In this document: positions 14,261 through 44,456 of the stretch, in pieces
Layout: the number at the start of each line of letters is the position of its first letter
Position numbering within the stretch: position 1 is the first letter of the stretch
From: Anthoceros angustus
Taxonomy: Eukaryota > Plantae > Anthocerotophyta
Direction: 5' to 3'
DNA: 64,000 nucleotides
Assembly: GCA_010909165.1 (NCBI GenBank)
Contig: MU008165.1
Span: 1,178,001 to 1,242,000 of the forward strand
Notes under the pieces: model-generated
The model's input: only the letters and a program-made list of their open reading frames with translations
Database searches by the model: none
Told to the model about the DNA's origin: nothing
Program-made: the position numbers and the translations under genes

Positions 14261-17200
14261 ATGGCCAGCATGACGCTGTCCAAGGCTTTTTCTCTCGTGG
14301 TGAGCCGGCTCGGGCGCTTGACTCTGTTTAATTGTTGCTGGAATGGCTGCATGCTGGTGTAGGACAAGTCTGTGTGCTCCTTTGCGGGAGGAGGAATTGG
14401 TGGACGCCGGTCGGGGTTTTAGGAAGTGGAGAATTGTTGTTGTGGTGATCAAGGCGTGGTATGAGTGGATGACCTGATGTCTGAAATGTGCGTGCGTGTA
14501 TTTATGCTTTGCTTTGTTGTGGCAGACCGGGATTGGGAGCTCAGTTAAGGCGTCTGAGAGGAGCAAGGCTGGTGCCTGCCAGGTTGCTGCTGCTCCCGCG
14601 CTTCTAGGGAATGCCGTGCAGAGTGTGAGGTGTGGAAGTAGCAGCTTCAACTGCGGGGCCGGGTTTGAGGCTCTCAGCCAGAAGGCGAATGTGTCCGTGA
14701 GCGCAGTGCCGAAATGCAGCTCTCGGGGCAATGGAGGAGCCCTTGGTGCTACGTGCGAGGAGAAGATATTGATTGCAAACAGAGGTGAAATTGCAGTGCG
14801 TATTATCCGATCTGCGCACGAAATGGGGATCCCCTGTGTGGCTGTGCACTCTACCATCGATAGGACGGCACTTCATGTGCAGCTCGCTGATGAGGCAGTC
14901 TGCATTGGCGAGGCACCCAGCAGCCAATCGTGAGTTTGTCTTTCCCTGGTTGCTGAAAGTATGTGCTGCGGAGTCTGGCTGTTCAAGAGTATGGATTTTG
15001 TTGTGCCTGGTAAGTCTTTTGATGCGTCTGGCACTATAGGTACCTTAATATCCCGAACATCGTCTCAGCGGCTATAAGTCGAAGGTGCACTATGTTGCAT
15101 CCTGGATATGGTTTTCTTGCGGAGAATGCTACTTTTGTCGACATCTGCAAGGACCATGGGATCAACTTCATCGGCCCCAATGTAAGGAACAGGCATGTGG
15201 CTGCATTCAGCTTTTGGTGGCTTGTGTTTCTATGCACTGTATCTTAGGATATCTTCTGGTTTACAGGCAGACAGCATTCGTGTGATGGGTGACAAGGCCA
15301 CTGCCAGAACAACCATGCAAAAGGCTGGAGTGCCAACCGTCCCTGGCAGTGCTGGGCTTATCGAGGTATGGCTTCCGCTCCGGGTGTGAATACCAGCTCC
15401 AGGTTTGCACTCTGTGGGCACTCATCTTCATGTTCGTTTCTGTTCACAGACAACGGAAGAAGCTGTAAGAACGGCCCACGAGATTGGGTTCCCAGTGATG
15501 ATCAAGGTAACCCTGTGATCTTGGAACACTGCACCTGGAAACTCTGTCTGTTGCGGTTCAGCTAAGGCTTTTGGCTGCTGCTTCAGGCAACTGCGGGAGG
15601 AGGTGGTCGTGGGATGCGACTTGCCAATGAGCCAGGAGAATTTGTCAAGTTGTTGCAGGTCTGATTCCGTATTCTTGGTGCCATAAGGGGGTCTCAACTG
15701 GTGACTAGTTTCACATAATTTGCCATGATCCCAGCGTCTGCTGCTTAGGAGGCTGTGTGTATAGGCAGCTTTCTGTTCCTGTTGCTTACGGAATGTGGTT
15801 TGCAGCAAGCAAGGGCTGAAGCAGGGGCTGCCTTCGGCAATGATGGCGTTTATCTTGAAAGATACATCAAGAATCCTAGGCACATCGAGTTTCAGGTCGG
15901 TATGCGGAACCACCTTTCCTTTCGTTCCTTCATGTGGGTGTGGAGACCTGCTTCTTATAGTTTGAACTTCATCAGGTCCTTGCAGACAAATACGGAAATG
16001 TGGTTCACTTGGGGGAGCGCGATTGCAGTATCCAGGTAAATCATTTGGTTGGGACCGTCAGGGGTCCTGGTTCAATAACTAGAAACTCAAATGAGATTAC
16101 GAAGTTAGTGACCGCACCATGATATTGTCTGGTATTAACGTATGGCTCCTGCATTTTCTATGGGAATGGCAGAGAAGAAATCAGAAACTTCTGGAGGAGG
16201 CTCCATCGCCTGCATTGACTCCTGAGCTTCGCAAGGCCATGGGAGATGCTGCAGTCGCAGCTGCTGCATCCATTGGTTATATCGGAGTCGGAACAATTGA
16301 GTTTCTTCTTGATGAGGATGGTAAAAGTTTCTACTTCATGGAAATGAACACTCGTATCCAGGTATGACATCCGGCATCTTGCAAGCTTTGGGGTTTCTGT
16401 TCTCTAAATCTTCGAGTCGTCTAATCTAAGGAGGGCCTCATTTTTCCAGGTCGAACATCCAGTGACAGAGTTGATCTCTTCGACTGATCTGATCGAGGAG
16501 CAAATTCGAGTTGCTTTGGGACATAAGCTTCGTTTCACCCAGGTGAAGTAGCATTTTTGGAATACGGTTTTGCAGCAGCAAGATCTGTGTGTTAATGTCA
16601 TTTTCTTATCCAACTTCAGGAAGACGTGGTGCTTCGTGGACATTCCATTGAGTGTCGTATAAATGCAGAGGATGCTTTTGCAGGATTCCGGCCAGGCCCA
16701 GGTAATGTCTAGAACCAAAGGCCGGTCAAGGGCTGTTAAGCCCTCGTATCCCGGATGTCGCTTATTGCCTCCGCCCTGAATGTATTTGTGCAGGCCGCAT
16801 CACGGGCTATCTTCCTCCAGGTGGGCCATTTGTCAGGATGGACAGTCACATCTACGCTGACTATGTCGTGCCTCCGAGCTATGATTCTCTTTTGGGGAAG
16901 GTGAGCACACTGTGGGTTGCATTTGTCCAGCGTTCACCTGTTCTGGGTGCCATCCTCACTATGTGTACCTGTGCACCAGTTGATTGTATGGGCCCCTACC
17001 AGAGAAAGAGCCATTGCGCGCATGCAACGTGCCTTGAACGATACAATCATCACAGGTATCCCACATAAAAGCGACCTTCCTAGTTGTTGATGGAAGTGCA
17101 TACCACAACCGTCTCCTCATGGGCTTCACTTATCTAACTTTTTGCACAGGCATACCCACGACAATTGAGTACCACAAGCTTATTCTGGAGGTTCAGGTCT

Positions 17201-17496
17201 GGCTGTTGTACTTATTGTGAATTCAATGGTCTCACTTTGCAGTATGAGGCTTGGTTGACTAACAGAATGGCTTTGCCAGGACTTCAAGGATGGAAAAGTG
17301 GACACCGCCTTCATCCCGAAACATGAAGAGGAGCTCCGAGCTGTAGGACATCTTTCACTTTTTTGTCTGTCCTTGTTGGTGTGCATCGTGGCCAGAGGCA
17401 GCCCCTCATATCCTTATTGGTTTGAATCTGCAGCCACAGGCGTTTCCGACACTACCCAAGTTAGAGGAGCCCGTGAAAGCTGGAGCTCTAGTTTAG
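14261..17496 (+). CDS. CAC2: Plastid biotin carboxylase subunit of heteromeric acetyl-CoA carboxylase, about 16 exons
   Basis: Transit-peptide exon [13 protein letters not shown], then [77 protein letters not shown], and final exon [20 protein letters not shown]; all joined by GT-AG introns. Confidence 0.95.
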
Positions 17497-17553
17497 AGAG
17501 CCAATATGTGTGTCTCCACGCTCACCGGCGGGGCTTTTTCGTGGAGTTCGCCT

Positions 17554-17850
17554 CTCGTCAAACCGATGGAAAACCACTTCACCAACAGAACGGTGTTGAA
17601 CTTTTTGGTAGTGAGCTACCCCCAAAATACCTTGGGACTACATTGAATTGCGGGCTGTTAAATCTGATCTACGTATTCGAGTCAAGAGTGCATGTTCTCG
17701 TCAAACTGATGTAAAACCACATCACCAAAAAACGACACAGGTTGTCCAACTGTTTGGTGGCGAGTTCCCCCCCCCCCAACAAAATACGTAGGGATTACAA
17801 TGAAATGCGGACTATTAAATCCGATCGAAGTGTTGAAATTGCGGGCTGTT
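17554..17850. repeat. Degenerate ~145-bp tandem repeat in the biotin carboxylase 3' flank
   Basis: ctcgtcaaac...ttgaattgcgggctgttaaatctgatc unit repeated with divergence; a homologous array follows the second BC copy at about 24906-25277. Confidence 0.6.
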
Positions 17851-17875
17851 AAACTTCAAAGAAGTGCTGTCACTT

Positions 17876-19860
17876 TGAATGCTAAGCCCAATATATTTTG
17901 TAACACATATTTCTTTTTTCAGTTGAAATGTAATACATTTTGCAATCCAACTGAAGTGACGATGGCAGCCAGATCCGGCACTCTCTCCCCATCTGGGAGA
18001 CTAAACGACCGGCACTCTGAGCTCTACAGTCAGGATCGTCCGGCAAGCTCCTGTGCAAGCCACTGCGACCCATCTCCATCTCCAAATCCAGCAGAATGGA
18101 GGACCGTCTTGGCCTGCCTGTTATGCAGCTAGAGCGTGGGGAGCTGGAGCAGCAGTCGGCACCATAGCTCTCGAGGTCGAGGCTCACAGGAGCGAAAACT
18201 GTCTCGGCCCGTGTGACCCAACCGAGACGCACCATCCCATCATTGCTAGGGTGAACAAGCACAAGCTTGCCCAATTAACCCCAGTATCCAGTAAAAAAGA
18301 CCAACCTACAAAAAGTACTTAGGCAGCTTTTGGTTTGCTGCAACCTACGGGCTGGGGGAATGAAGAGATGGTTTGCTGCAACCTTCGGGCTGGGGGAACG
18401 AAGAGGTGGTTTGCTGCAACCTACGGGCTGGGAATGAAGAGGTGGCCTGCTTGCAACCGGCCCTATTTCCCGACCTTCAAAGCCACTACTCCAGCAATAG
18501 CCCAACGTGGACGGATGGCGACAATGGTGTTAAGTGCGGTCGGTGACCAGCATCCGCCACGAGACTTGGTCATGGCTCACGAGATCACGAGCCATGAGCA
18601 AGAGACACACATAGAGTGTACGACCATAGTAGGTAAGTACTTTGTGTTTGTGTTCAATGCACTTTGTGCCCGCAACATTGCACATCCATGGTCGACAAGA
18701 TGGACACAATTTTGCCAATGTTGGTGCTCATTGTTGCACTTGTGTCACTATCCTTAGTGATCCCAATCGACTTTTGGGAATGGCGATTCTTTTTGCCTTG
18801 CATCTCATTCGGTAACTCGGGCTCAAAGGCCACATGTATGGAATTACAAGCATCATTCTTGAATGCTAAGCCCAATATATTTTGTAACACATATTTCTTT
18901 TTCAGTTGAAATGTAATACATTTTGCAATCCAACTGAAGTGACGATGGCAGCCAGATCCGGCACTCTCTCCCCATCTGGGAGACTAAACGACCGGCACTC
19001 TGAGCTCTACAGTCAGGATCGTCCGGCAAGCTCCTGTGCAAGCCACTGCGACCCATCTCCATCTCCAAATCCAGCAGAATGGAGGACCGTCTTGGCCTGC
19101 CTGTTATGCAGCTAGAGCGTGGGGAGCTGGAGCAGCAGTCGGCACCATAGCTCTCGAGGTCGAGGCTCACAGGAGCGAAAACTGTCTCGGCCCGTGTGAC
19201 CCAACCGAGACGCACCATCCCATCATTGCTAGGGTGAACAAGCACAAGCTTGCCCAATTAACCCCAGTATCCAGTAAAAAGACCAACCTACAAAAAGTAC
19301 TTAGGCAGCTTTTGGTTTGCTGCAACCTACGGGCTGGGGGAATGAAGAGATGGTTTGCTGCAACCTTCGGGCTGGGGGAACGAAGAGGTGGTTTGCTGCA
19401 ACCTACGGGCTGGGGAATGAAGAGGTGGCCTGCTTGCAACCGGCCCTATTTCCTGACCTTCAAAGCCACTACTCCAGCAATAGCCCAACGTGGACGGATG
19501 GCGACAATGGTGTTAAGTGCAGGGTCAGTGACCAGCACATCCGCCACCGAGACTTGGTCATGGCTCCTGAGATGCAGGAGCCATGAGCAAGAGACCTGCA
19601 CATAGAGTGTACGACCATAGTAGGTAAGTACTTTGTGTTTGTGTTCAATGCCCGCCTGTGCCCCGCAACATTTGCACATCCATGGTCAGCAAGATGGACA
19701 CAATTTTGCCAATGTTGGTGCCTGTCATTGTTGCACTTGTGTCACTATCCTTAGTGATCCCAATCGACTTTTGGGAATGGCAGATTCTTTTTTGCCTTGC
19801 ATCTCATTCGGTAACTCAGGCTCAAAAGGCCACATGTATGGAATTACAAGCATCATTCTT
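17876..19860. repeat. Tandem duplication of a ~985-bp unit containing three ~37-bp subrepeats
   Basis: ttgaatgctaagcccaatatattttgtaac at 17876 and 18858; ggtttgctgcaacct(a/t)cgggctggggga x3 in each unit. Confidence 0.9.
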
Positions 19861-21000
19861 GGACTGAATGCTTGTTTGGCAATTCTTCTTCTTTGATCAG
19901 ACTGCTTACAAGCCTGTGACATGGATTGGATTACGGTGAATATTACATGTGCCCTGTGTGAAAGATTTTTGGCTTTTGTATAAAAATGTGGTTGCTATCA
20001 CAAATGAAGCGAGGTTTGCCCATTTCTTCCGTTTTAAGCCCAGCTACTTCTTGCTGCATCCTGCACAACATCGTACTGTGGGGTCCATCAACAACTCCGG
20101 AACCCACCTCGCTCGCTGCCCACCACCTACCTAGCTGGTGAGCACATTGCACACACGACTCTGTCCGAGATGTCATATTTTCAATGTCTAAGGAGAGCAG
20201 ATTCTTTTCCTTTCAGGGAGCTCCCATATACTTTGCTCAATGCCGTTTCTTTCAGAATTGACTTACTTTTGATCCGGGGGATCATATGTTTGTTGCACAC
20301 GTGGTTGTAATTAATATTGACCCTACCCGAGATACTGTATATCATCATCAACTCTATGGGTCGGGTAGCGGAAGGATGCACTTCGGCTAAGGTTCGCAAG
20401 TACACCCCCATGCACTAAGGCCACATGTATGGAATTACAAGCATCATTCTTGGGCGAATGCTTGTTTGGCAATTCTTCTTCTTTGATCAGACTGCTTACA
20501 AGCCTGTGACATGGATTGGATTACGGTGAATATTACATGTGCCCTGTGTGAAAGATTTTTGGCTTTTGTATAAAAATGTGGTTGCTATCACAAATGAAGC
20601 GAGGTTTGCCCATTTCTTCCGTTTTAAGCCCAGCTACTTCTTGCATCACCCTTCGCAGGTCCATCAACAACTCCGGAACCCACCTCGCTCGCTGCCCACC
20701 ACCTACCTAGCTGGTGAGCACATTGCACACACGACTCTGTCCGAGATGTCATATTTTCAATGTCTAAGGAGAGCAGATTCTTTTCCTTTCAGGGAGCTCC
20801 CATATACTTTGCTCAATGCCGTTTCTTTCAGAATTGACTTACTTTTGATCCGGGGGATCATATGTTTGTTGCACACGTGGTTGTAATTAATATTGACCCT
20901 ACCCGAGATACTGTATATCATCATCAACTCTATGGGTCGGGTAGCGGAAGGATGCACTTCGGCTAAGGTTCGCAAGTACACCCCCATGCACTAAGGCCAC
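19826..21000. repeat. Tandem duplication of a ~590-bp unit
   Basis: Units start aaggccacatgtatggaattacaagc at 19826 and 20417; the identical 76-aa minus-strand ORF appears at 20181-20411 and 20757-20987. Confidence 0.9.
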
Positions 21001-21535
21001 AGGTGCTTTTATTACCCTACATTCGGAAGAGAATGTCACAAAGAAAGTACTAGTTAGGTCTTCTAAGTTATAAGTTTAAGGAAGCTTCTATATTATAATA
21101 GATTCCTAGTTAAGATTGCTCACTTGTCCTCTATTTAAAAGCCTTTAGGACTAAGTGTCTCCGTATGTTTTTTTTTCTGAAATATTATAAGTGGTCTAGT
21201 GACAAGTTTATGGAAATTTCTTACTTGTTTATCCTAATCTTTTTTTTCTGAAATATTTTAAGTGGCCTAGTGACAAGTTTGTGGAAAATTCTTACTTGTT
21301 TATCCTATCAATTAAGTTCACAATTGTGTTTGTTGGATAAGGTGATTGTGGCAACTTAGGTGAGTTTTACTTTAATTATTGTTGTGTTGCTTAATCCAGA
21401 TCTGCATCCTGAGGCAATTTGAAGTTAAAATTTTACTTCCTAATGCAGACATTAGAGTAATTGTTGTACAAGTGTTCTAAGGAGAGGAGCAGTAATAGGC
21501 TAAATTTAAGAGACTCCTACAACTGCATAGCTAAC

Positions 21536-21985
21536 ATGACAAGTGCAGACCGCGTTATTCACTGCGACCCCGATATCATGGGAGGAGCTCCTGTTTTTGT
21601 TGGAACCCACGTGTTCATGACTAGCTTGTTCGACTGGATCGACAATGGTTCATTGGAAGAATTTTTATATAACTTTCCAAGTGTTACACGTGAGCAAGCG
21701 ATAACAGTTTTTAAACTAGCAAGGGAAATGCTAACAAGCTATGAGAAAGATGCTGATATTAGGGTAGGAACTCTTGTGTTTGTCGGGACTCATGTCCCTG
21801 TGAAGCTGTTGTTCGACTATCTCGATGGTATCGATCCACTTGGTGCATTCTTAGATGATTTTCCAAGTGTCACGTATGAACAAGTCATTGCAGTTCTTAA
21901 ATTAGCAAGGAAAATGTTGTTCGCCTATGCGAAAAGTAGGCTATCTGTAATTGATATAGATATAGATATTGATACGGATATATAG
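21536..21985 (+). CDS. Tandem double-DUF433 (COG2442, antitoxin-like) protein of bacterial type, 149 aa, intronless CDS
   Basis: Domain 1: RVIHCDPDIMGGAPVFVGTHVFMTSLFDWIDNGSLEEFLYNFPSVTREQAITVFKLAREML. Domain 2: DADIRVGTLVFVGTHVPVKLLFDYLDGIDPLGAFLDDFPSVTYEQVIAVLKLARKML. Both fit the DUF433 pattern DP-I-GG-P-F-GTRVP...L-EFL-DFP-V--EQ. The ORF ends in a (GATATA)n tract encoding DIDIDI. Confidence 0.85.
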   Translation: MTSADRVIHCDPDIMGGAPVFVGTHVFMTSLFDWIDNGSLEEFLYNFPSVTREQAITVFKLAREMLTSYEKDADIRVGTLVFVGTHVPVKLLFDYLDGIDPLGAFLDDFPSVTYEQVIAVLKLARKMLFAYAKSRLSVIDIDIDIDTDI

Positions 21986-22460
21986 ATACAGATTCATATT
22001 CGAATATAGACAAAACATTTATGTCTCATATGCTGACCCTTATTACAAATGAAAAGATTAAATCTGCCCACACTTGTTTTTGCTCTGGTTGAGATAATGA
22101 CGAGGAACGTTGTGTTGTGAACTATCGCCACTAACCAGAACTGATGTTTATCCAGGCTGGGAACTCTCACAGTCCTTTGATACCTGCAGGCAACCAAGTT
22201 CCTCCATTGCCCCGTTCTCACAAGTCTTTGTGTGCTACTAAGCCTATACCTCGAGAAGCATACCCCTTCAATTAACCTATTCCACACTAACAGTTCCCAA
22301 ACCGCGAATGCGAGGCACTAATAGTCACTACAAAGTAATGACGCGCTCCGACTCTTACGTCTCGAAGTGTATTAGGTTCCAAAATAAATAGGCTCCCCAT
22401 CGCACCTCTTATGTATAAGACCCCTCGGCGTTCTTTGCTGACTCTGACACCGGCATCACA

Positions 22461-22506
22461 CACTACATAAGTAGTGACTACATAAGTAGTGACTACATAG
22501 GTAATG
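22461..22506. repeat. 15-bp x3 tandem repeat of a palindromic unit
   Basis: actacataagtagtg twice, then actacataggtaatg; the first unit reads CACTAC-ATAA-GTAGTG (perfect 6-bp arms). Confidence 0.85.
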
Positions 22507-23339
22507 GCGCCTGCGCCCGAAAACTAAGCGCCTGCCAAAGAGACTTTTGCAAACCTCATAAGGTGGCTCTAGACATGGCAAGGGAGCCCTGCAATTCCAA
22601 GGGAAGGGGCGTGCATATGGCAGAGATTCCATTGGTGATGTAGCCAGGCAGAATTGGCACAATCCAGCCCTACGACTAGCCAATTTCACCGAATCTGCGG
22701 CCAATTTGCAGTCAATCTGCCAATCTTGGAGACTTGGTGCGCTTGAATCTGGTGCAAGGGAGGGCGCCCTGGTTTGTTGAGCCTCGAGCGGGATCCTCTA
22801 ACTCTTACATGTGGAGCAGCATTGCTAGCCGAGACCTGCACAAACTGAAATCTAGACCGTGAACAGCAAGTCCAAACCAGAATTTTTGGCATCTGAGAGC
22901 ACCCAGGAGCGGGCGCCTGGGCCGGCTGCGGATTGCCATCATACAAAGATTTCTGGCTAGATAAGCATCCTTCTAATCTGCTGGAACCAAATCCCGTCCA
23001 AGAAAGGCCACGGGAAAGACACGGAGAGTTTTTTTGGTATGTAAGGGTTTTAGGGTGGCTGGCTGCTGTGGAGGCTGTGGGTTGGTGCGCGTAGCGATGA
23101 CGTGTTTGTTAGCGGCCTTATTCTGTCCATGCACCTTCGACAGCGGTCCCTGAACAGTGGCCATAGCGAAGGCTGAAGCTTCGTTTCTTCTCTGTGCACG
23201 TCACTGGCTTCGGTCGGGACTGAACAATTTGGTGCGTGTACAGGGATTCTACGAAGAGCTCCTGCTAACGTTATCGTAGGGAGTTGACCCCTGGCAAGCA
23301 AAGCCTCCAGGTGCAACAGTGTAAGTGGCCCAGCACTTC

Positions 23340-23740
23340 CACTTCTGAGAAAGTGTGGGTAGGGAGGGGTTTCCCAGCGATGGTCGTTGTCAGAGGAGGA
23401 GCACTTGTGGCAACAATTTTTTCTGGACCCTACCTTGTGGTGGGACAACAGACTTCCGGCGAAAGGGGTCCGGCGAGGTGCTGTGGTTAAACGACATGCT
23501 TAAGGCAGCTTGGGTTGATGAGCAGCTCGTTTCCTTGGATATGCAGATGGGCCACGGTGTCTCTCCTTCCAAGTCGAGCTCTCCTTATGATCCTGAACTT
23601 GGAAGGCATGCTTATTCTGAAATGGGCTCCAGGTGCAGCAGTGTAAGGAGCCCAGCACTTCCACATCCAATGGGCCATGGTGCCTCTCCTTCCGAGTCCG
23701 GTTCTCAGGATAAGCCTGAACCTAGCGAGCCTGCACGATC
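23340..23740 (+). mobile_element. Possible LINE ORF1 (DUF4283-like) remnant with a 123-bp internal repeat
   Basis: VWVGRGFPAMVVV...IFSGPYLVVG weakly resembles the GRGFF...GPW motif of plant LINE ORF1; the 41-aa repeat MGHG-SPS-S-S---PE...SEMG is directly visible (23547 and 23670). Confidence 0.3.
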
Positions 23741-23820
23741 GGAAATGGGTGTCGTAACGGCTGGAACAGTGAGCATGTCACGTCAACAGGGGAGGCCTTG
23801 GAGCTCAGGCTGTTGGAGCT

Positions 23821-24032
23821 GTGGAATCTCTGGCTGAGACAGACTCTCCTATGTCTCAGTCTTTGATTTGCACTGTGATAAAGCTGTGTACAGCTAAGAA
23901 GGATTTGGTTGTGGGGCGACGAGTTCATGATCTCAGTGTCAAACTCGGGTACGAGTTGATTGCATACGTGGGGAACCATATCTTGCGCATGTATGTATGT
24001 GGAGGAAGGCTAGTCAAGGCCATGGATGTGTT
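23821..24032 (+). pseudogene. PLS-class PPR protein N-terminal fragment
   Basis: ICTVIKLCTAKKDLVVGRRVHDLSVKLGYELIAYVGNHILRMYVCGGRLVKAMDVF resembles L/S motifs of PLS PPRs; it ends abruptly in biotin carboxylase sequence. Confidence 0.6.
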
Positions 24033-24849
24033 CAGGATTCCGGCCAGGCCCAGGTAATTTTAGAACCAAAGGCCCGTCAAGGGCTGTGAAGCCCTCGTAT
24101 CCCGGATGTCGCTTACTGCCTCCGTCCTGAATGTATTTGTGCAGGCCGTATCACGGGCTATCTTCCTCCAGGTGGGCCATTTGTCAGGATGGGCAGTCAC
24201 ATCTACGCTGACTATGCTGTGCCTCCGAGATATGATTCTCTTTTGGGGAAGGTAAGCACATTGTGGATTGCATTTGTGCAGCGTTCACCTGTTCTGGGTG
24301 CCATCCTCACTTTGTGTACCTGTGCACCAGTTGATTGTATGGGCTCCTACCAGAGGAGCCATTGCGCGCATGCAACGTGCCTTAAACGATACAATCATCG
24401 CAGGTATCCCTCATAAAAGCGACCTTCCTAGTTGGTCATGGAAGCGCAGATCACAAACGTCTCCTCATTGGCTTCCCTTATCTAACTTTTTGCACAGGCA
24501 TACCCACGACAATCGAGTACCACAAGCTTATTCTGGAGGTTCAGGTCTGGCTGTTGTACTTATTGTGAATTCAATGGTCTCACTTTGCAGTATGAGGCTT
24601 GGTTGACTAACAAAATGACCCTTTGCCAGGACTTCAAGTATGGAAAAGTAGACACCGCCTTCATTCCGAAACATGAAGAGGAGCTCCGTGCTGTAGGACA
24701 TCTTTCACTTTTTTGTCTGTCCCGCTTGCTGGTCGGCATCGTGGCCAGAGGCAGCCCCTCATATCCATTTTGGTTTGATTGTGCAGCCACAGGCGTTGAC
24801 GACACTACCCAAGTTAGAGGAGCTCGTGAAAGCTGGAGCCGCAGTTTAG
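24033..24849 (+). pseudogene. CAC2: 5'-truncated second copy of biotin carboxylase (last 5-6 exons)
   Basis: Collinear with 16681-17496 including introns, with many substitutions; final exon PQALTTLPKLEELVKAGAAV*. Confidence 0.85.
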
Positions 24850-25378
24850 AGAGCCAACAGGTGTGTCTCCACGCTCACCTGTGGGGCTTTTTCGTGACTT
24901 AACCTCTTGTCAAACCGATGGAAAACTACATTATCAACAAAACGGTGTTGAACATTTTGGTAGTGAGCTACCTTGGGACTGCATTGAATTGCGGGCTGTT
25001 AAATCTGATCTACGTATTCGAGTCAAGAGTGCATGTTCTCGTCTAACCGATGTAAAACCACACCACACAGGGCTGAACTTTTTGGTGGTGGGTTCCTCCC
25101 AAAATAACTAGGGATTACATTGAAATGCGGGCTGTTAAACCTGAAAGAAGTGGTGGAATTGCGGGCTATTAAATTTGAACGAAGTGTTGGAATTGCGGGT
25201 GTTGAACTTTTTGGTGGTGAGTTCCCTCCCAAAAGTACTGGGGACCACATTGAATTGCGGGCTATTAAATCGGATCATGAGCCTGCAAGTTGTCTTCTCT
25301 GCCTGTCAATAGGCAACGTTCCAGAAATACAGGTGACACTGTCACATGTTCATAACTAAACTGGTGATAAGCAGACTT

Positions 25379-28018
25379 CTAAGTCCGAATAACGTAGGAA
25401 TTGGCGCTTGTCACGTATCTGACCCAGCGGTAAGGGTTGAAGGACTTTGACTTCCTCACGAGCTGAAGATAACGGACCTGCGACAAAGGGACGATTACAT
25501 TTCAACGACTCGGACAAAGTTGCCTCATTCCAACCCATAAAACGCAGCAAGGACGCACACGAACCTGCAGTCTAGACGCATTGAACATCGGGATCGTGAA
25601 ATTCATGCTCACGGGACCGGCTTCTTTCTTGATGTTCCCTGGAGAAGATCAAAGCAGCTAATTACCTACCCTCCTTCAAGCATGTACTCCAAAGAGCTTG
25701 CGCTGTCAAAATCACGAAAACAAAACCACATGCCAATCTGGAATACCATTTCTTTCTTGAGTCAACGTAAGCTTGGCTCGTAACGTATGATCAGTACCTC
25801 CCACAACCTACACGAGAAAGAGTGCAGCCAAAGAACTTAGAATGGGGACAACCACTATTCGAAGAGAAGGGCCCCATAACACAAAGTACGATACAACCCT
25901 CACCTTCTTAAGATGCCATTCCATTGTTTTGGTTGATTCTTTGAAATCCGTTGTCTGCCCGGCTGCTCCGGTTTCCAGCTCAAAGCTGACCCTGTAACAA
26001 CAGCACAGAACTCCTCTGACACCTGTGCTTCAAATGTAGTAGGCTACAGCAAACTGAAGCTAATGAGGCTGTAACCTTGACGTCGATTTTGGAAGAGGCA
26101 AACGCAGCACCACAGTGTTTGCTGCTATGGTAGAGGCAAAATCAGCTCGGACCTTCAGGGTGACCTCAGCCTGCAGGAGAACACGGACCTGTGACCCAAC
26201 ACTCTTTGCCATGGGAGAGAAGGTAAACAAAATACAACTCTCAAGACCACCTTAAAAGGGCCGGCCTCCTCGATGACTGGTAAAACTCTGAAAGGAGGTT
26301 TAAACTCCTGGGTCATCCGGTAGTTCATTACAGCAAACTCCCCATCAGGAGGTACCTGTTTGCACAATATGGTTTAAACACAAATGAAGTTCCTCAGAAA
26401 CTACAAACAGCACAGGTGAATAGAGATGTTAGCCAAATAGTTCAAAGGTGTTAGGAACACCAACCAGAGTAAGAGTGCGATCTACTTCAAAGTCATCAAG
26501 CCGCACCGATTCATGAAAGTTGCAGTCATCCAATATTACCGTGTTCATTCCTGTTGACCCGCTATAATCCGGTGCTGCATGTGAATGCCACATAAAAACA
26601 GCCATGCTCCATCATTACCCTCAGAAACCCATGGTCATACACTTGGGCAACATCTTATCAATTCTGAAACAGCCCTGACCAGCACATGCAACAGCGACAA
26701 CTGACAGTGACTGCCTTTAATCTCAAGAGAAACATACTATAGCCTGATTGTAAAGAACGGCCAATATTCAGATCCTCATTTAGAGCTACTTTGATCTCTG
26801 GATTCCCAGTCAAGTAGCTTTTCATCTGGATGGTACCATCAACCTCCGACGTCAAAATGTAGCCCTGCAAGTGCAACATTTCACTTAGCGAGCGCATGAG
26901 AAGGATGAATTGTGAAGATTCCAATTGTAAGTAATCTGTCTTACGCTTGAATTGAAAGTCACACTAATCTTCTCAATGATGTCCACAAAGACTTCTTCTC
27001 GCCTTCTGCCCCCTCCTTCAGTTGACACAACTGACTTTGTCACAGCAGTTCCAGGCACGCGCTTAGCTCCTTGCTGAGACAGCAGGTTACCAGCCTTCGG
27101 TTAACTCCCTGCACTATCAGCTCTCCTTCTTCATCCCCAACACATACCAGAAATTCAGAACTCAACATTCACAATCTATCCAACAGGATCAACTGTGCCT
27201 AAAGGGCTTACAACAAATATTGCTGCAGGGCCAAGAGATGGAATTCGTGCAGACTCCACAACCACAGGCTCATTGAAGACAAAGGACTTCAAAGCCTCCG
27301 TCGATGTGGTTTGTGGATAGCCAAAATCCTGAGGACAGCCAATCAGATCTGAGCAGAAGAGTTGAACAGGATTCAAGCATGGGACACACGACTGACTGGT
27401 CTTCACTCACAATCATTTCATCGAGCAGCTCGTAAACCAGTACAAAGTTCTTCCTGAGTGAATCCTCGTTCAAAACCCCAAGATAATCTTTGGTTACTCT
27501 GGCAATTCGTTGAAGCAGTTCCACAACAAGAGCAGGAGAAACGTTCACTCTCGTAGTTGCCACAAAAAGCAGTCCCGCAACCTTCACGTGAAGATAGTTT
27601 ACAGCATCCACATTCTGCAACGCATCGGAAAACATTTGAACACATTGCAATAGAGTCTACCCTCCATACGACTTGCTAAAAGCCCTTGAGGGAAAGCAAC
27701 AATCAAACGGGAAGCCAGCACAGCAAGTCATCGTCACATGACAATGTTAAGGAATACCTACGAACACAGGAGGTGCCTCTTCACTCTCTTCCCCCCCGTC
27801 ACCCTTCCAGAATTTCACTTTGCGGAAAAAGATCTCGGCGCTTCCCTTGGGCACATCGCCCCTGTCTGCGTTACAAATCCCTCCAAGCATTTCACTATGT
27901 GCAACACTTCTGCCCCATACCAAAGATCAGCAAGACACAACTTCAGATAGAAATCCTTACAGTCCCTGAAAATGATGTTATCACCCCGCAGGGAAAGGAC
28001 AAACAACTGCGATATCAT
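25379..28018 (-). CDS. AP4M1: Adaptor protein complex AP-4 subunit mu, multi-exon
   Basis: [120 protein letters not shown]. Confidence 0.95.
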
Positions 28019-28730
28019 TCTGAAACCGTTTGGAAGATCTACGCCTGCATGAATGAACCCAAGAGCATCAGAAGCCGTCAACCGTCATCATCGTGGAAGG
28101 TTCCAGCCAAAGAGCAGCATTAAGCATGAGCATTCTCAAGACATGCCAAGCATTTGACACATCAATCACCCAACACCTGGGAACCGGAAGAAATCGAGCT
28201 GACCGCAGGGATCCGGGGCTACGTCAGATGACGATATCAACCAGAAACCAGCTGCTCGAGAGACCCACGACGTTCACGAAGCTCACCGATCCTTGCAATT
28301 GAGCTTCCGAGATCAGTTCCGACCCTGACACATCCACCACCTCGATCGCAAGAGGATTCACAAAGACGGTAATGAAATAGTCCGGGGTAATTATGAAAAC
28401 GTAATGGGAACCAGGGTATTTTCCAACCCGGTTGCTCGTAGGTCTTGTATAGAGACCCCAGCTCTGACACTTCGGCACCCAGCTCTGTGAGTCTGAGTTG
28501 AAGTGACCACCCCTCTGTTGCGCGATCTGCAAGCTTCCAGAAGCCACAGTTCTTGCGTGAAGGTCGTGTGATCTGCGTGTGCTGCGTTCTTTCGAAATTT
28601 ATCTAAAGTGTTGGGTTCAGGTGTGTTGTGGCGAGCTCTACCGAATTCCAGTGAAAGCTGTTGGAGGTGATCGGTTCGGGTTCGATTTTCATTGTGTTCA
28701 CCTGAGCTTGCCGTTGTTGCTGTGCAGAAC

Positions 28731-28961
28731 ATGGCAATTTACAGGAGATGGAATATTGCATCAGGGCCTCTGGTTATGCTGGCCGCCGCTTTTGTCGCTG
28801 TCACTGCAGCTACATACTTGACCACCACTAGTGTAAGTTCGTGGCATTCTGAAAAGCTTGTTGTGGATATCGGGCTTCGTTTGCTTCAGGCCTTGAGTAT
28901 TGACTTGCATTGACAGGGCACAAGTTCCAGTGGTAACAAGCCTCCGAAGAAGGAGAAATGA
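28731..28961 (+). CDS. Spliced 48-aa single-TM microprotein (exons 28731-28832, 28917-28961)
   Basis: MAIYRRWNIASGPLVMLAAAFVAVTAATYLTTTS/GTSSSGNKPPKKEK*; GTAAGT donor, GACAG acceptor, phase 0; TGCAG acceptor just before the ATG suggests a leader intron. Confidence 0.5.
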
Positions 28962-29494
28962 GGACTTCCGGCAGTGGCAACATGATGCTTCGCTGTTTCC
29001 ATCCGTGCCTATCAATGAGTTGGGTGCCGGTATTGACAATTTTTGTAGTAGCGATCCCTTCATGGGGCAGTGCTTCACATGGGTGTAGGGATTTAAAATG
29101 ATGGACCCTCGATGCTCCAAAGATCTCTTGTTGTGAACAGGTTTTGGGATGCATCTTAGGGTAAACCATGGAAGTTCGAAGAACTCCGGCAACTTTGAGA
29201 CAGCGGTGGACAGCGAGTGCGAGTGCGAGTGTGATAATAATGTTCAACGTTCAGCAGAACTGTACAGTCAAAGAAAAATTGAAACGCATCTGACAAGATG
29301 GCTAGTTTCTGGGCCTCTCGACGTTCATATTTAACCACGTGCCTATCGTCCATTTATCTCTGGACTACTCGTTGTTAGCTACCAGATCTGCCAGCACCTG
29401 ATGCCCAAGACCCGGCAGTAGTCTGAATCGGTTTTGAGCTAAACCGCAGACCAGAGAGGTTTCGGAGGCAAGAGCTGCAGGTACAAAGGCATAA

Positions 29495-30371
29495 TTACTG
29501 CCGCTCTATGACTTGTAGTACCTTCTTAATAATCCGCTGCAGAGCTGATGCACTAGACGTGCATTGAGGGTCTGCAAAGCAGGAACGTCCCTCCTCAGCT
29601 GCTCTTCCCAGCCTAGGATCTAGAGGCACTCGCCCCAGAAAAGGCACCTTCATTGCTTTCGCCATCTTCTCTGCACCTCCGGCACCAGCATAGAACACCT
29701 CGGAGCAGGCAAAGACTGAGAGCAGATGAGGAGCATGTCGTTTGATCTCATCCAGCACTTGGTCAGTAACATCCTCCTCTTCCCCACTATCTAAGAACTT
29801 CTTGAACTCAAGACTTTCTAGTGGTTGTTGCAGGGAACTCATGTTCTCCACGACACCGAGGACAGGGATTCCTACTTTTTTACAGAAGTTAACCTCTTTT
29901 CTCACATCAATGAGGGACACCTCTTGCGGAGTAGTCACTATGATTGCCCCATCAACGTTTGTAGCCTTCAGATACTGTGCTATAGAAATGTGTTCATCTG
30001 AAGTGCCGGGAGGGGCATCTACGATAAGGTAATCCAAGTCCCCCCAGTAAACATCCTTCAAAAACTGCTTGATCAGACCATTCTTCCGTGGTCCCCTCCA
30101 AATGACAGCCTCATCTGGATCCGACAGCATGAACCCAATGGACATCACACCAAGATTATCTTCCACATAAACAGGAGACCAACCCAAGTTACTCTGATGT
30201 ATCTCTTGACCTTCAAGACCTAGCATCTTGGGTATACTAGGTCCACATATATCGATGTCCAGCAGCCCCACTTGCTTGTCTCTGGCAGCAAGCGCAAACG
30301 ACAGCTGTGCTGCAAAGGTACTCTTTCCAACTCCACCTTTTCCCAGACAGTACCAGCACTTTATGTGCAAC
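29495..30371 (-). pseudogene. NBP35: NBP35 cytosolic Fe-S scaffold, 3' part only; the 5' end is replaced by AP4M intron-1/exon-1 sequence
   Basis: [75 protein letters not shown]; lacks the N-terminal Cys cluster. Confidence 0.9.
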
Positions 30372-31709
30372 ACTTCTGCCCCATACCAAAGATCAGCAAG
30401 ACACAACTTCAGATAGAAATCCTTACAGTCCCTGAAAATGATGTTATCACCCGCAGGAAAGGACAAACAACTGCGATATCATTCTGAAACCGTTTGGAAG
30501 ATCTACGCCTGCATGAATGAACCCAAGAGCATCAGAAGCCGTCAACCGTCATCATCGTGGAAGGTTCCAGCCAAAGAGCAGCATTAAGCATGAGCATTCT
30601 CAAGACATGCCAAGCATTGACACATCAATCACCCAACACCTGGGAACCGGAAGAAATCGAGCTGACCGCAGGGATCCGGGGCTACGTCAGATGACGATAT
30701 CAACCAGAAACCAGCTGCTCGAGAGACCCACGACGTTCACGAAGCTCACCGATCCTTGCAATTGAGCTTCCGAGATCAGTTCCGACCCTGACACATCCAC
30801 CACCTCGATCGCAAGAGGATTCACAAAGACGGTAATGAAATAGTCCGGGGTAATTATGAAAACGTAATGGGAACCAGGGTATTTTCCAACCCGGTTGCTC
30901 GTAGGTCTTGTATAGAGACCCCAGCTCTGACACTTCGGCACCCAGCTCTGTGAGTCTGAGTTGAAGTGACCACCCTCTGTTGCGCGATCTGCAAGCTTCC
31001 AGAAGCCACAGTTCTTGCGTGAAGGTCGTGTGATCTGCGTGTGCTGCGTTCTTTCGAAATTTATCTAAAGTGTTGGGTTCAGGTGTGTTGTGGCGAGCTC
31101 TACCGAATTCCAGTGAAAGCTGTTGGAGGTGATCGGTTCGGGTTCGATTTTCATTGTGTTCACCTGAGCTTGCCGTTGTTGCTGTGCAGAACATGGCAAT
31201 TTACAGGAGATGGAATATTGCATCAGGGCCTCTGGTTATGCTGGCCGCTTTTGTCGCTGTCACTGCAGCTACATACTTGACCACCACTAGTGTAAGTTCG
31301 TGGCATTCTGAAAAGCTTGTTGTGGATATCGGGCTTCGTTTGCTTCAGGCCTTGAGTATTGACTTGCATTGACAGGGCACAAGTTCCAGTGGTAACAAGC
31401 CTCCGAAGAAGGAGAAATGAGGACTTCCGGCAGTGGCAACATGATGCTTCGCTGTTTCCATCCGTGCCTATCAATGAGTTGGGTGCCGGTATTGACAATT
31501 TTGTAGTAGCGATCCCTTCATGGGGCAGTGCTTCACATGGGTGTAGGGATTTAAAATGATGGACCCTCGATGCTCCAAAGATCTCTTGTTGTGAACAGGT
31601 TTTGGGATGCATCTTAGGGTAAACCATGGAAGTTCGAAGAACTCCGGCAACTTTGAGACAGCGGTGGACAGCGAGTGCGAGTGCGAGTGTGATAATAATG
31701 TTCAACGTT
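30362..31709. repeat. Second copy of 27897-29255 (AP4M 5' end, intergenic region, microprotein gene)
   Basis: Near-identical sequence with small indels; bounded by microhomologies tatgtgcaac (30362-30371) and tcaacgtt (31702-31709). The microprotein copy at 31193-31420 lacks one Ala codon. Confidence 0.92.
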
Positions 31710-32626
31710 TGTAGCCTTCAGATACTGTGCTATAGAAATGTGTTCATCTGAAGTGCCGGGAGGGGCATCTACGATAAGGTAATCCAAGTCCCCCCAGTAA
31801 ACATCCTTCAAAAACTGCTTGATCAGACCATTCTTCCGTGGTCCCCTCCAAATGACAGCCTCATCTGGATCCGACAGCATGAACCCAATGGACATCACAC
31901 CAAGATTATCTTCCACATAAACAGGAGACCAACCCAAGTTACTCTGATGTATCTCTTGACCTTCAAGACCTAGCATCTTGGGTATACTAGGTCCACATAT
32001 ATCGATGTCCAGCAGCCCCACTTGCTTGTCTCTGGCAGCAAGCGCAAACGACAGCTGTGCTGCAAAGGTACTCTTTCCAACTCCACCCTTCCCAGACAGT
32101 ACCAGCACTTTATGTGCAACGGTACTCATACGATCTGCTATGTCGACTAAGTCTGAAAAGACAAGGTCAGCTTAATTTTCCTCTTGCTACTCACAATGGT
32201 TAGGGATTCAGAACTACTTCGTCAGCCCAATTGAACACAGTCCGACCGCAGCTCAAGCGCACGACACAGCTGGACAAAGACGAACCTGGATCAGGACCCT
32301 TGGGAGCCGTTGCACAAGCCTGCTGATTGGGACATCCCTCACAGGCTGCAGCTTTTCCAGCTGTCTCAGCTTCTGTCCCAGGACAATCTGCCAGAGGAGA
32401 AATTCAAGTGATCCATCAGTAAGCCAGTTCCGTCGCAGAACTTCCATACCACCTATCCGAGCATACTTTGCTCCATCAGGGACACTCTCCAGGAGGCTGA
32501 GAGACTGCAGGAGGAAAATTGAAGTCTGAATGGATTGCTTGAGCTACACGGCACACGGCAAGTACGTAGATTAGCGTCTTCCGGGACAGCGCCGACGGCA
32601 TGCTCTTCGTCACCGCCATTCGCCAT
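31702..32626 (-). pseudogene. NBP35: NBP35 5' part only (with the N-terminal Fe-S exon), truncated after ...QYLKATNV
   Basis: Exons MANGGDEEHAVGAVPEDANL / HCPGTEAETAGKAAACEGCPNQQACATAPKGPDP / [28 protein letters not shown]...; the CX13CX2CX5C motif is diagnostic of NBP35. Confidence 0.9.
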
Positions 32627-33059
32627 GCCTCCGTCGGGCGAATGACTGGCTCTCAGTCGGGCTATGGCCGCGGTCTTCGATGCACACCCCTTTGCAGAGA
32701 GCCACCGCAACAACGGGCCAGACAATGCACTTTGCCACTGTGTGTCTAGGTAGTGAAATAGTCTTAGTTTGCCCCCTACAAGTCAATACCCGTTGCGCAA
32801 GGCGGAAAATAAAAAATAACTTGCGTGAATAAAAACATGCACATAGGAAAACAGGAATATTTAATCTCTTTTCATTATCTAGATTAATATATAAATTTAT
32901 TATTATTATTATTTCTATCTTTTCATCTATTTTATTTAAAATCATTTAATTATTTATAGTAACTTGCTATGAAATATTGATCTGGTCACTCGGCTTCATG
33001 TGTGTGACTTTGTTTTTTGGGTGTACGCTACGGAAAATATGCCATGGCATCTATCGGAT

Positions 33060-34730
33060 ACTTGTTGTGAACAGGTTTTGGGATGCATCTTAGGGTAAAC
33101 CATGGAAGTTCGAAGAACTCCGGCAACTTTGAGACAGCGGTGGACAGCGAGTGCGAGTGTGATAATAATGTTCAACGTTCAGCAGAACTGTACAGTCAAA
33201 GAAAATTGAAGTCTGAAAAGCTTGTTGTGAACAGGTTTTGGGATGCATCTTAGGGTAAACCATGGAAGTTCGAAGAACTCCGGCAACTTTGAGACAGCGG
33301 TGGACAGCGAGTGCGAGTGCGAGTGCGAGTGCGAGTGCGAGTGCGAGTGCGAGTGCGAGTGCGAGTGCGAGTGCGAGTGCGAGTGCGAGTGCGAGTGCGA
33401 GTGCGAGTGCGAGTGCGAGTGCGAGTGCGAGTGCGAGTGTGATAATAATGTTCAACGTTCAGCAGAACTGTACAGTCAAAGAAAATTGAAACGCATCTGA
33501 CAAGATGGCTAGTTTCTGGGCCTCTCGACGTTCATATTTAACCACGTGCCTATCAATGAGTTGGGTGCCGGTATTGACAATTTTGTAGTAGCGATCCCTT
33601 CATGGGGCAGTGCTTCACATGGGTGTAGGGATTTAAAATGATGGACCCTCGATGCTCCAAAGATCTCTTGTTGTGAACAGGTTTTGGGATGCATCTTAGG
33701 GTAAACCATGGAAGTTCGAAGAACTCCGGCAACTTTGAGACAGCGGTGGACAGCGAGTGCGAGTGCGAGTGTGATAATAATGTTCAACGTTCAGCAGAAC
33801 TGTACAGTCAAAGAAAATTGAAACGCATCTGACAAGATGGCTAGTTTCTGGGCCTCTCGACGTTCATATTTAACCACGTGCCTATCGTCCATTTATCTCT
33901 GGACTACTCGTTGTTAGCTACCAGATCTGCCAGCACCTGATGCCCAAGACCCGGCAGTAGTCTGAATCGGTTTTGAGCTAAACCGCAGACCAGAGAGGTT
34001 TCAGGCAAGAGCTGCAGGTACAAAGGCATAATTACTGCCGCTCTATGACTTGTAGTACAAGCTTGTTGTGAACAGGTTTTGGGATGCATCTTAGGGTAAA
34101 CCATGGAAGTTCGAAGAACTCCGGCAACTTTGAGACAGCGGTGGACAGCGAGTGCGAGTGTGATAATAATCCGCTGCAGAGCTGATGCACTAGACGTGCA
34201 TTGAGGGTCTGCAAAGCAGGAACGTCCCTCCTCAGCTGCTCTTCCGGGACAGCGCCGACGGCATGCTCTTCGTCACCGCCATTCGCCATGCCTCCGTCGG
34301 GCGAATGACTGGCTCTCAGTCGGGCTATGGCCGCGGTCTTCGATGCACACCCTTTGCAGAGAGCCACCGCAACAACGGGCCAGACAATGCACTTTGCCAC
34401 TGTGTGTCTAGGTAGTGAAATAGTCTTAGTTTGCCCCCTACAAGTCAATACCCGTTGCGCAAGGCGGAAAATAAAAATAACTTGCGTGAATAAAAACATG
34501 CACATAGGAAAACAGGAATATTTAATCTCTTTTCATTATCTAGATTAATATATAAATTTATTATTATTATTATTTCTATCTTTTCATCTATTTTATTTAA
34601 AATCATTTAATTATTTATAGTAACTTGCTATGAAATATTGATCTGGTCACTCGGCTTCATGTGTGTGACTTTGTTTTTTTTGGGTGTACGCTACGGAAAT
34701 ATGCCATGGCATCTATCAGATACTTGCGTA
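33060..34730. repeat. Patchwork of short direct copies of 28850-29560 and 32570-33060
   Basis: ttgtgaacaggttttgggatgcatcttagggtaaaccatgg recurs at about 33065, 33225, 33670 and 34065, interleaved with NBP35 3'-end and 5'-flank pieces. Confidence 0.9.
33307..33439. repeat. (GAGTGC)n hexanucleotide microsatellite, about 22 units
   Basis: Directly visible; sister copies of this segment carry only 2-3 units (e.g. 29214-29231). Confidence 0.95.
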
Positions 34731-42500: not shown

Positions 42501-44405
42501 GTCTTCCTCACTTCTCACTTGTGAATGTGGCTCTGCTGTGGATGCATCCGCATCTTGCTCATTGTTCAAATGGGAGTCATCGTATTGACTCATGATGCCA
42601 TTTGTGACGTTATGTTTGCAATGGCTTGTGAAAGTAGTTATATGGCTTGGAGGGAGAGTTAGTATGCTTTACGTATAAGGTAAATAGTCAGAGTCGGCTT
42701 GTACCTAGTCCGCCGCGACTAAGTCTTCGTGGGCGTGGTAGTTACTCACCCTACAGAATCCACCCTAAACAAGTTATCTTCAATCGTCCATGTTGGTGGT
42801 AACTAGAGTGGCGGCTTTCAAGGTTACTAAGTATAGGAAAATGCGTCGGTCATCTCCTCATCCACCTTACCTTGAAGACTTCTCGGTTACTAAGTATAGG
42901 GAATGCGGTCGGTCATCTCCTCATCCCGCTTATCTTGAAGACTTATGGGGCGTTTGTTAAATTTATCAAGTCTGTGCCAAAGCATATCATACAAGGAGAT
43001 ATGCGGCAGACTACCTCTCCTATTTCACATCGTTCTTGCCCTCCAAAGGGCATTTGCAAGGGCTATTTCTGACGACAGCGATTGTTGGAGATGCACCCTC
43101 AACTAATTCAGAATATGTAGGCCATTCAATCTCCTAATTTTAACATTGTAGGCATGGGTGACTTTAGACACGAGTTTAGTTGCCCTTCTTTACTTTGACC
43201 CTTGGGGTCTCTCTTTGATCTCTTTTAGTAGATGGTGTCACCTATCTATTTTTCCTTAATAAAACTATTCTCAATAAAACAAGTGATTTCAAAAGTACTT
43301 GCTTATGTCTACAGTGCAAGTTAGCCTTCTTTTGGCTCAAACACCTTTACAAACCACAAGGGATTGTGTAAGAAAGGGATTCCTTGGCTGATCCATGCAT
43401 GAGCGAGGCTTAACACAATGGCCAACAAGATAGACGATTCATTAAGGTGGAAATCTTGTTAAATGTAAGATTTAGGTGGTATCTTATAGGTGTTGGCCAC
43501 GACAATTTTGCTGTGAATTGAGCTTCAATATTATTCCCATTGATTGTGATGGACTATGTTGTCTTCCTCACTTCTCACTTGTGAATGTGGCTTTTGGCTC
43601 AAACACCTTTACAAACCACAAGGGATTGTGTAAGAAAGGGATTCCTTGGCTGATCCATGCATGAGCGAGGCTTAACACAATGGCCAACAAGATAATCTTT
43701 GGAAAAATTAAGCACTATCCTCCTCGAATGAAGAAGCACGAGCATGTGCGAATCAAGAAGACCGCCGACGGCTGTCATTGCCGAAGACCATGGTGAGGTA
43801 GGGTTTGGCGGCCATGAGATAGCAACGAAGAAAACATATTCGCACAAGGTAGGGGGTGGCGGGCATGAAAACATTGTGTCCGGTTCTTTGTTTTCAAAGT
43901 TGGAAGGACGAGAAAAATTTTGAAGCAAACAACCCGTTTGAGGAGGAAAACTATGTGTCCCCTTTGGTGCTTGGCGCTCTTGGTTAGGGCGCCAAAGCGA
44001 ACATAACACCATGTCTTTGTGAGAAAACAATCCGTACTCGAATCTAAGGTATATTCCTCAAGATGCCTACACCTTGCAACGGGAGCGTTTTAGACCGAGG
44101 CTTTTGGCGGATGACCTTTCCCATATTGAAGACCTTCCTTTATTGGAGGACCCACATGTGGCTTTTGGCATTCTCTCCTCATGCTTTGCCAAACACCCAG
44201 TTACCTTATCGCACATTGCCAACCTGGACACGCTGGCCGTGTCGCGTCTTCTTAGACAGGGACAATGGAATCGTGTTTTTGTTAGGGAACTGTGATCTTT
44301 GGAAAAATTAAGCACTATCCTCCTCGAATGAAGAAGCACGAGCATGTGCGAATCAAGAAGACCGCCGACGGCTGTCATTGCCTTCAAGACCATGGTGAGG
44401 TAGGG

Positions 44406-44424
44406 TTATTATTATTATTATTAT

Positions 44425-44456
<32 letters not shown>

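Follow-up and report, generated by a model that had tools for sequence, protein, structure and literature searches.

An intact open reading frame (ORF) of bacterial antitoxin type lies among plant genes in the stretch of DNA analysed here, which measures 64,000 nucleotides and is referred to as the window. The ORF encodes two DUF433 (COG2442) domains in tandem, its horizontal, bacterial origin is well supported by sequence comparison, and it makes a real and tidy candidate for the transfer of a toxin-antitoxin component from a bacterium to a plant. COG2442/DUF433 proteins act in bacteria as antitoxins of PIN-like toxins (PMC2701414). The Synechocystis member VapB10 forms a complex with VapC10 and thereby neutralises it, attaches to its own promoter and is broken down by ClpXP2s (PMC3834315). 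The window ORF has no such toxin partner, and on balance it is regarded as an antitoxin relic of a bacterial toxin-antitoxin operon, intact as yet but without its toxin, rather than as a working plant gene, a view that is held with a modest degree of confidence.

The Two-Domain ORF

The ORF (21536–21985) has 149 codons and a stop codon in an uninterrupted frame (Table 1). The open frame extends over 174 codons, a length rarely expected in this DNA, as 500 shuffles of the local 1.9 kb gave a mean of 94 and a maximum of 172 codons. Against Pfam PF04255 (DUF433) the whole protein scores 71.7 bits, and the halves taken alone (40.5 bits for the N-terminal and 35.1 bits for the C-terminal half) also lie above the Pfam gathering cut-off of 23.6 bits. 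With a family HMM made from 80 short DUF433 relatives the N domain reaches 99.9 bits and the C domain 82.4 bits, values that fall inside the range of genuine bacterial multi-domain proteins. An earlier, sequence-only reading of this DNA had claimed an intronless ORF with two tandem DUF433 domains and had proposed a HMMER search with PF04255 as a check; the search confirmed the claim. NCBIfam and PADLOC assigned no family to the protein. Residues 3–134 are colinear with bacterial proteins, and the ORF appears to be intronless as far as this homology reaches.

Both domains read GTH where the family has GTR, as had been noticed at first sight, and the substitution is indeed a rare one: in 293 motif instances from 276 proteins (the relatives and the window protein) the position is occupied by Arg in 277 and by His in 3, two of the latter being the window's own. 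Apart from this Arg, domain 1 preserves the core motif G.PVF.GTRVP and domain 2 preserves it in part; the first strand motif of the C-terminal domain is degenerate (DADIRVGTL vs. DP.I.GG.P). The last 15 residues of the protein are encoded by a microsatellite. Identity between the halves amounts to 58% at the protein level and about 70% at the DNA level, which agrees with the earlier remark that the domains are well diverged, unlike the near-identical repeats found elsewhere in the window (90–100% identity).

The predicted structure is in keeping with the domain assignment. In an AlphaFold2 model (pLDDT 88.4, pTM 0.77, from a 40-sequence alignment) each half consists of a short strand region and three helices. 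The best structural matches of the predicted N domain are Ava_0674 of Anabaena variabilis (2GA1; Z 5.0, rmsd 2.5 over 62 residues), which ranks first in both Foldseek and VIA-align, and the COG2442 domain of Rv2018 (5AF3; Z 4.2, rmsd 1.9 over 58 residues). The predicted model thus has the strand-plus-three-helix DUF433/COG2442 fold as in 2GA1, with modest scores. The two known proteins are only ~19% identical to the window protein and contain single domains, which in Rv2018 is fused to a winged helix. An alignment-profile search of the PDB retrieved 2GA1 at E 7e-5, and phmmer against the same database gave a chance match only. Prediction of the N and C domains as a two-chain complex resulted in a score of 0.31 against a mark of 0.34 (controls 0.00), which gives no verdict and carries no weight either way.

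Table 1. Features of the window in and around the tandem DUF433 ORF.
Feature	Position	Strand	Remarks
Biotin carboxylase (accC/CAC2-like), multi-exon	14478..17400 (end approximate)	+	Pfam Biotin_carb_N E 1.9e-18, weak Biotin_carb_C; exon-like peptides
AT-rich, CpG-poor upstream flank	20958..21535	.	GC 0.34, CpG observed/expected 0.24; holds 71-bp tandem repeat 21169-21307
Tandem two-domain DUF433 ORF (COG2442, VapB-like antitoxin)	21536..21985	+	Intact, ATG at 21536, TAG ending 21985; PF04255 E 4.3e-20, 2 stretches
N-terminal DUF433 domain	21536..21748	+	Residues 1-71; His25 CAC at 21608-21610 replaces near-invariant Arg
C-terminal DUF433 domain	21746..21937	+	Residues 71-134; His86 CAT at 21791-21793 replaces Arg
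C-terminal tail SRLSVIDIDIDIDTDI then stop	21938..21985	+	Non-homologous; encoded by GATATA-type microsatellite; 21941-22006 flagged as repeat in read mapping
Downstream DNA without toxin remnant or bacterial domain	21986..22900	.	tblastn; local ORFs without Pfam match
Partial copy of the last three or four biotin carboxylase exons	24024-25186	+	89% identity to 16670-17866, 7.35 kb downstream

Bacterial Kinship and Putative Donor

All relatives of the ORF recovered in word-indexed, metagenome, plasmid and Atlas searches are prokaryotic or metagenomic; hornwort proteomes are seemingly absent from these collections, and a search with NBP35 likewise returned no named hornwort. An exhaustive HMMER scan of 1.84 billion representatives yielded 3529 relatives, none of them below E 1e-30 and the best 44–57% identical. 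The best full-length matches are two-domain proteins of 154–157 aa (38–43% identity over 86–91% of the window protein), and identity to the individual window domains peaks at 62–63%. Scans of GTDB genomes and JGI metagenomes, which use exact 8-residue words, found only 1 and 6 loci, respectively, all of them 59% identical or less. With the N domain alone as query, five single-domain relatives at 45–58% identity and no plant fragment were obtained. Phage genomes contained no match to the ORF protein, which is also absent from a collection of 15 billion proteins that includes assemblies of public runs. The proposal that an antitoxin-type gene of bacterial kinship (DUF433/COG2442) resides in plant DNA as a result of horizontal transfer is sustained by these searches, in which only prokaryotic or metagenomic relatives and no vertical plant clade were found. 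No report linking DUF433 to plants was found in the literature searched.

The closest named relatives are cyanobacterial and AT-rich, namely a locus of a Snowella MAG (L010, 57% identical) and ssl8008 of Synechocystis pSYSG (55%). The Snowella locus and a set of lake-metagenome loci (L014–L017) are 57–62% identical, with a GC content of 0.39–0.43 vs. 0.405 in the ORF. Proteins of the lake loci begin with ...VIHCDPDIMGG and finish with ...LAKEMLTTYA, and the end motifs that the sequence-only reading likened to cyanobacterial members (VIHCDPDIMGG..., ...LA(K/R)EML..Y) do occur in these and in the Snowella protein. A cyanobacterium-like donor is plausible on this likeness. The more specific suggestion of a Nostoc-like donor is not supported, as the Nostoc plasmid copy is only 44% identical and no relative exceeds ~63% identity per domain.

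Plant Setting of the Locus

Judged from its gene content, the window is nuclear DNA of a seed-free-like land plant. Its host ORFs include P450, HMGR (HMG-CoA reductase), Tim44, NBP35, SRR1 and biotin carboxylase; the NBP35 ORF shows 83% identity to proteins of lycophytes and ferns and 76–77% to those of liverworts. The DUF433 ORF is intergenic: the biotin carboxylase gene ends about 4 kb upstream of it, and the partial copy of this gene follows about 2 kb further on. Its own flanks are unique within the window, and tblastn found no second DUF433 copy there. No bacterial-domain ORF was found nearby (the local ORFs have no Pfam match), and the 64 kb contain no other bacterial gene.

Neither inverted repeats nor transposon protein domains were found around the ORF. 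Direct repeats of ~1 kb (16670–17866 and 24024–25186) were considered as LTRs of an element carrying the ORF and were ruled out, being biotin carboxylase exons at single-copy depth. The downstream exon copy differs by small indels (TRERAIA vs. TRGAIA) and is probably a pseudogene fragment; positions 24033–24896 are well covered by one of the four sequencing runs consulted (X2) and by the runs of two further organisms, B and C.

Repeats of several kinds occur throughout the window. Young tandem duplications, both 96.8% identical, are present at 17875–18861 vs. 18859–19861 and at 19826–20425 vs. 20417–21001, and short repeats include the 71-bp tandem repeat of the upstream flank (Table 1) and a 15-nt triple repeat at 22462–22506. 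A high-copy repeat at 23137–24121 has a summed contig depth of thousands to hundreds of thousands in all four runs, many internal rearrangement joints and ORFs without a Pfam domain. The NBP35 region (27896–34726) is segmentally duplicated at 99% identity (27896–29251/30362–31709, 29952–30371/31702–32120 and 29004–29521/33545–34058), which represents either a recent duplication or assembly redundancy. Two array regions follow: an AT-rich array at 41300–54300, with units of 1.1–1.8 kb in at least five copies at 92–96% identity, and the region 55926–60481, with a 2.3-kb tandem pair (55926–58217 vs. 58208–60481) at 98% identity.

In base composition the ORF has a GC content of 0.405 and a GC3 of 0.36. 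The earlier impression that it is AT-richer than the plant genes is right with respect to the nearby host ORFs (GC3 0.48–0.84) and fails for other parts of the window, since the immediate upstream flank (GC 0.33–0.34) and the SRR1 ORF in the AT-rich right part (GC3 0.34) are richer still in A and T. The CpG observed/expected ratio is 0.95 in the ORF, 0.24 in the 578 bp upstream and 0.67 in the whole window, and the ORF ranks in the top 6% of GC-matched 450-nt windows. This CpG content is the mark of a foreign or young sequence, and its boundary is sharp. An origin of both Arg-to-His changes by CpG deamination of methylated plant DNA (CGY to CAY) is unsupported, as the ORF overall shows no CpG depletion, although for those two codons it may remain conceivable.

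Type II PIN-COG2442 modules are recognised by a toxin gene that directly adjoins the antitoxin gene, an arrangement that is present in the bacterial relatives and absent from the window. In the bacterial loci the toxin ORF overlaps the last codons of the antitoxin; in the window, homology to bacterial antitoxins stops at 21938, where the toxin gene would begin. No remnant of a DUF5615/PIN toxin was found in the window, and tblastn with three bacterial DUF5615 toxins (E up to 100) gave nothing better than E 44 near the ORF.

Relic or Working Gene

The events that may have led to the present locus can be outlined as follows. From a bacterial type II toxin-antitoxin operon (DUF433/COG2442 plus a DUF5615 PIN-like toxin), the antitoxin half would have entered the plant by horizontal transfer and inserted into intergenic, repeat-rich DNA of a seed-free land plant. 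Bacterial proteins of this kind consist of three-helix DNA-binding domains that neutralise, by binding it, the PIN-like RNase encoded directly downstream and attach to their own promoter, as demonstrated for VapB10 of Synechocystis; the two- and three-domain versions would plausibly be single-chain equivalents of the antitoxin dimer. The plant copy would most likely have been doubled on arrival and have come from an AT-rich, probably cyanobacterium-like donor that is not closely sampled. Only the antitoxin gene is present, with a frame that now ends in a microsatellite. The domain assignment, the kinship with bacteria, the plant surroundings and the missing toxin are shown by the data, and the kind of donor, the place of the duplication and the lack of function are inferred.

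The preference for a relic is based on the lack of a cognate toxin, the lack of visible transcription, the change of a near-invariant Arg to His in both domains and the improvised C-terminus. It is also supported by run X1 (organism A, DNA contigs), in which a contig over the ORF differs from the window at 21594 and 21708, both differences being non-synonymous (V20A, V58A). The same contig is 10 letters shorter than the window over 21552–21929. All X1 contigs in this region are 0.5–2.6% shorter and the shortfall may be assembly noise; if it were real and inside the ORF, the frame would be broken in that sample. Concerning transcription, run X2 has no depth over 19394–21954, while 24122–24900 is well covered; this run is guessed to be RNA and consists of assembled contigs, and the gap is accordingly a weak sign of non-transcription.

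The main rival of the relic reading is a domesticated, expressed plant gene, in which selection would maintain the toxin-less two-domain DUF433 protein, for instance to regulate genes as a small DNA-binding protein or to bind PIN-like nucleases, which may belong to cyanobacteria or other microbes associated with the plant. An intact frame, domain scores in the bacterial range and CpG sites that are kept while the flanks are depleted would fit purifying selection in the plant as well, and a frame of 149 codons in AT-rich DNA is itself a point in favour of this explanation. The predicted two-domain fold is confident (pLDDT 88, pTM 0.77), and the dN/dS of 0.22 between the halves indicates a long protein-level constraint, although it does not tell in which host. 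A similar sequence is found in the run of organism B; should those contigs be orthologous, the insertion would not be very recent, and the persistence of an intact frame would call for an explanation. These observations are countered by the features on which the relic reading is based (no transcript in X2, which is guessed to be an RNA run; the absence of a cognate toxin from the window; the lost Arg in both domains; a C-terminus made from a microsatellite), by the two protein-altering differences and the possibly broken frame of the X1 contig, and by the absence of the protein from the 15-billion-protein collection. Domestication is considered improbable, though a serious contender. A more particular version would be a long shot: a hornwort would maintain and express a double antitoxin of cyanobacterial origin, joined in one chain and lacking a toxin, either for immunity against the PIN-like DUF5615 nucleases of invaders or microbial partners, or for DNA-binding regulation of a new kind, and a plant would thereby have recruited a component of a toxin-antitoxin system.

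Origin of the Tandem Arrangement

The family had been regarded as normally single-domain and paired with a PIN-like DUF5615 toxin. The first part of this view is weak: of 271 sequences scanned (the 270 closest relatives that were fetched and the window protein), 34 contain more than one DUF433 domain (28 have two and 6 have three), 33 of these being bacterial. Of the bacterial multi-domain genes examined, most precede a DUF5615 gene. At two-domain loci (L001, L007, and L008) and at a three-domain locus (L011/L012) on bacterial contigs, the end of the antitoxin gene overlaps a gene for 109–111 aa that passes the Pfam DUF5615/PIN_10 cut-offs. The tandem DUF433 proteins P0002, P0003, P0005/P0123, P0131, and P0129 resemble the window protein in architecture, align colinearly with 86–91% of it at 38–43% identity, measure 154–220 aa and are each followed by a DUF5615/PIN_10 gene. 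They differ from the window gene in their GC-rich contigs (0.50–0.72), the overlapping toxin gene, a longer linker and the GTR kept in the domains that were read. The two-domain antitoxin of the P0002 type adjoins a gene of the mandelate racemase/muconate-lactonising-enzyme family. A further two-domain DUF433 protein of 188 aa (P0004; loci L002–L005, from bacterial metagenome and Logan contigs) is encoded without a toxin gene, and in every case a convergent DUF4291 gene comes next. The literature searched yielded no description of tandem DUF433 antitoxins.

Between the halves of the window gene pS is 0.64, dS 1.47, dN 0.32, and dN/dS 0.22. Because the halves differ at 64% of synonymous sites with a dN/dS of this size, the duplication is old and was followed by long constraint at the protein level. 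A duplication that preceded the transfer, in the bacterial donor lineage, would be the more economical place for it on these sequence data.

The sequence-only reading had put the duplication after the transfer, that is, a single DUF433 domain would have arrived and been duplicated in tandem inside the plant genome; this question is separate from that of a function of the gene. Several observations are consistent with this order of events. In two IQ-TREE runs (63–74 domains, 65 columns) the window domains are sisters (UFBoot 84 / SH-aLRT 74 in the first), which fits a duplication later than the split from all sampled bacteria, possibly in the plant, and in the best tree the N and C domains of the P0002 type form separate well-supported clades with the window domains outside both. 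The rare His and the Lys in KLAR.ML are common to both window domains, and the window is full of local tandem duplications. These duplications, however, are 90–100% identical vs. ~70% between the halves. Multi-domain DUF433 genes arise often in bacteria, the support for the sister grouping is only moderate, and a tree of 65 columns has little power. An AU test did not reject the joining of the window C domain to the bacterial C-domain clade (p 0.37), and in a FastTree of 292 domains, which is unresolved, the window domains are not joined. At plant nuclear substitution rates, a dS of about 1.5 would be reached only by a very old event. The near-saturated synonymous sites would thus imply a very old duplication on the plant side, yet the CpG content looks young. 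A duplication in the plant is unlikely, and the doubling more probably took place in the donor lineage. The overall picture of a plant-made pseudo-dimer derived from a Nostoc symbiont was for the most part not upheld; the doubled form is ordinary in bacteria.

Integration or Assembly Artefact

The sequencing runs were also considered with regard to an artefact, in which the ORF would stem from bacterial contaminant DNA mis-joined to the plant assembly, or from the reads of some associated bacterium. The short-read contig of run X1 (617 bp) spans 21552–21929 and extends for ~250 bp into non-bacterial downstream DNA, at a depth of 10.6 vs. 15–20 for neighbouring contigs. The X1 contigs break between 21397 and 21552, so that no independent contig ties the ORF to a named plant gene and its linkage to biotin carboxylase and NBP35 comes from the window assembly alone. 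The flank 19000–21166 is present in both the organism B and the organism C run, the latter having no contigs over 21167–22939. Run X3 (organism B) has contigs that match ~21535–21695 at ≥85% identity, cover only the first third of the ORF and start almost exactly at the ATG; their summed depth is ~504 vs. ~137 for single-copy contigs (as read from depth bins). This match could reflect several plant copies or a close bacterial relative in the sample.

The ends of the X1 contigs and the start and depth of the organism B pieces, which are such as a bacterial gene in the sample might show, speak for an artefact, which is nevertheless very improbable: the 64 kb hold no bacterial gene besides the ORF; the operon breaks off where the gene ends, and the short-read contig that covers the ORF passes on, at a depth like that of plant contigs, into microsatellite and non-coding sequence; upstream, the DNA is depleted in CpG and bears a tandem repeat, as is typical of the host; and no bacterial protein among 15 billion proteins exceeds ~63% identity.

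Comparison with Known Systems and Significance

Among characterized systems, the closest in kind are cyanobacterial COG2442/DUF433 antitoxins, which have short N- and C-terminal motifs in common with the window protein. VapB10 (ssr2962, from the vapBC10 PIN-COG2442 locus of Synechocystis sp. PCC 6803; PMC3834315) belongs to the same Pfam family, and ssl8008 (ssl8008/sll8007 of pSYSG; PMC4963859), which adjoins a DUF5615 gene, shows 55% identity to either of the window domains. VapB10 is a single-domain protein co-transcribed with its PIN toxin, whereas the window gene encodes two domains with His instead of the conserved Arg, lacks a toxin and lies on a eukaryotic chromosome.

Transfers from bacteria to the hornwort Anthoceros angustus have been published for 19 genes in 14 families (PMC7027989). 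They resemble the present case in that a bacterial gene is embedded among bryophyte plant genes, and differ from it in being mostly metabolic enzymes with transcript support and a GC content (57.6%) above that of other genes, whereas the window ORF is AT-rich and no transcript of it was seen. Neither DUF433, PF04255 nor the term "antitoxin" is mentioned in that article or in three of its supplementary files.

Bacterial genes in bryophytes are well documented but mostly encode enzymes, and it is unusual to meet a piece of a toxin-antitoxin system in the chromosome of a plant. Should the ORF be no more than a relic, it provides a clean, small example of a bacterial operon fragment in plant DNA, severed between two genes, closed off by a microsatellite and bacterial to this day in its CpG content. 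If it were expressed and conserved, it would be a rare eukaryotic adoption of an antitoxin and a handle on the function of tandem DUF433 proteins. For the family itself, the finding that bacteria commonly pair DUF5615 toxins with tandem DUF433 antitoxins of two or three domains corrects the view of DUF433 proteins as essentially single-domain.
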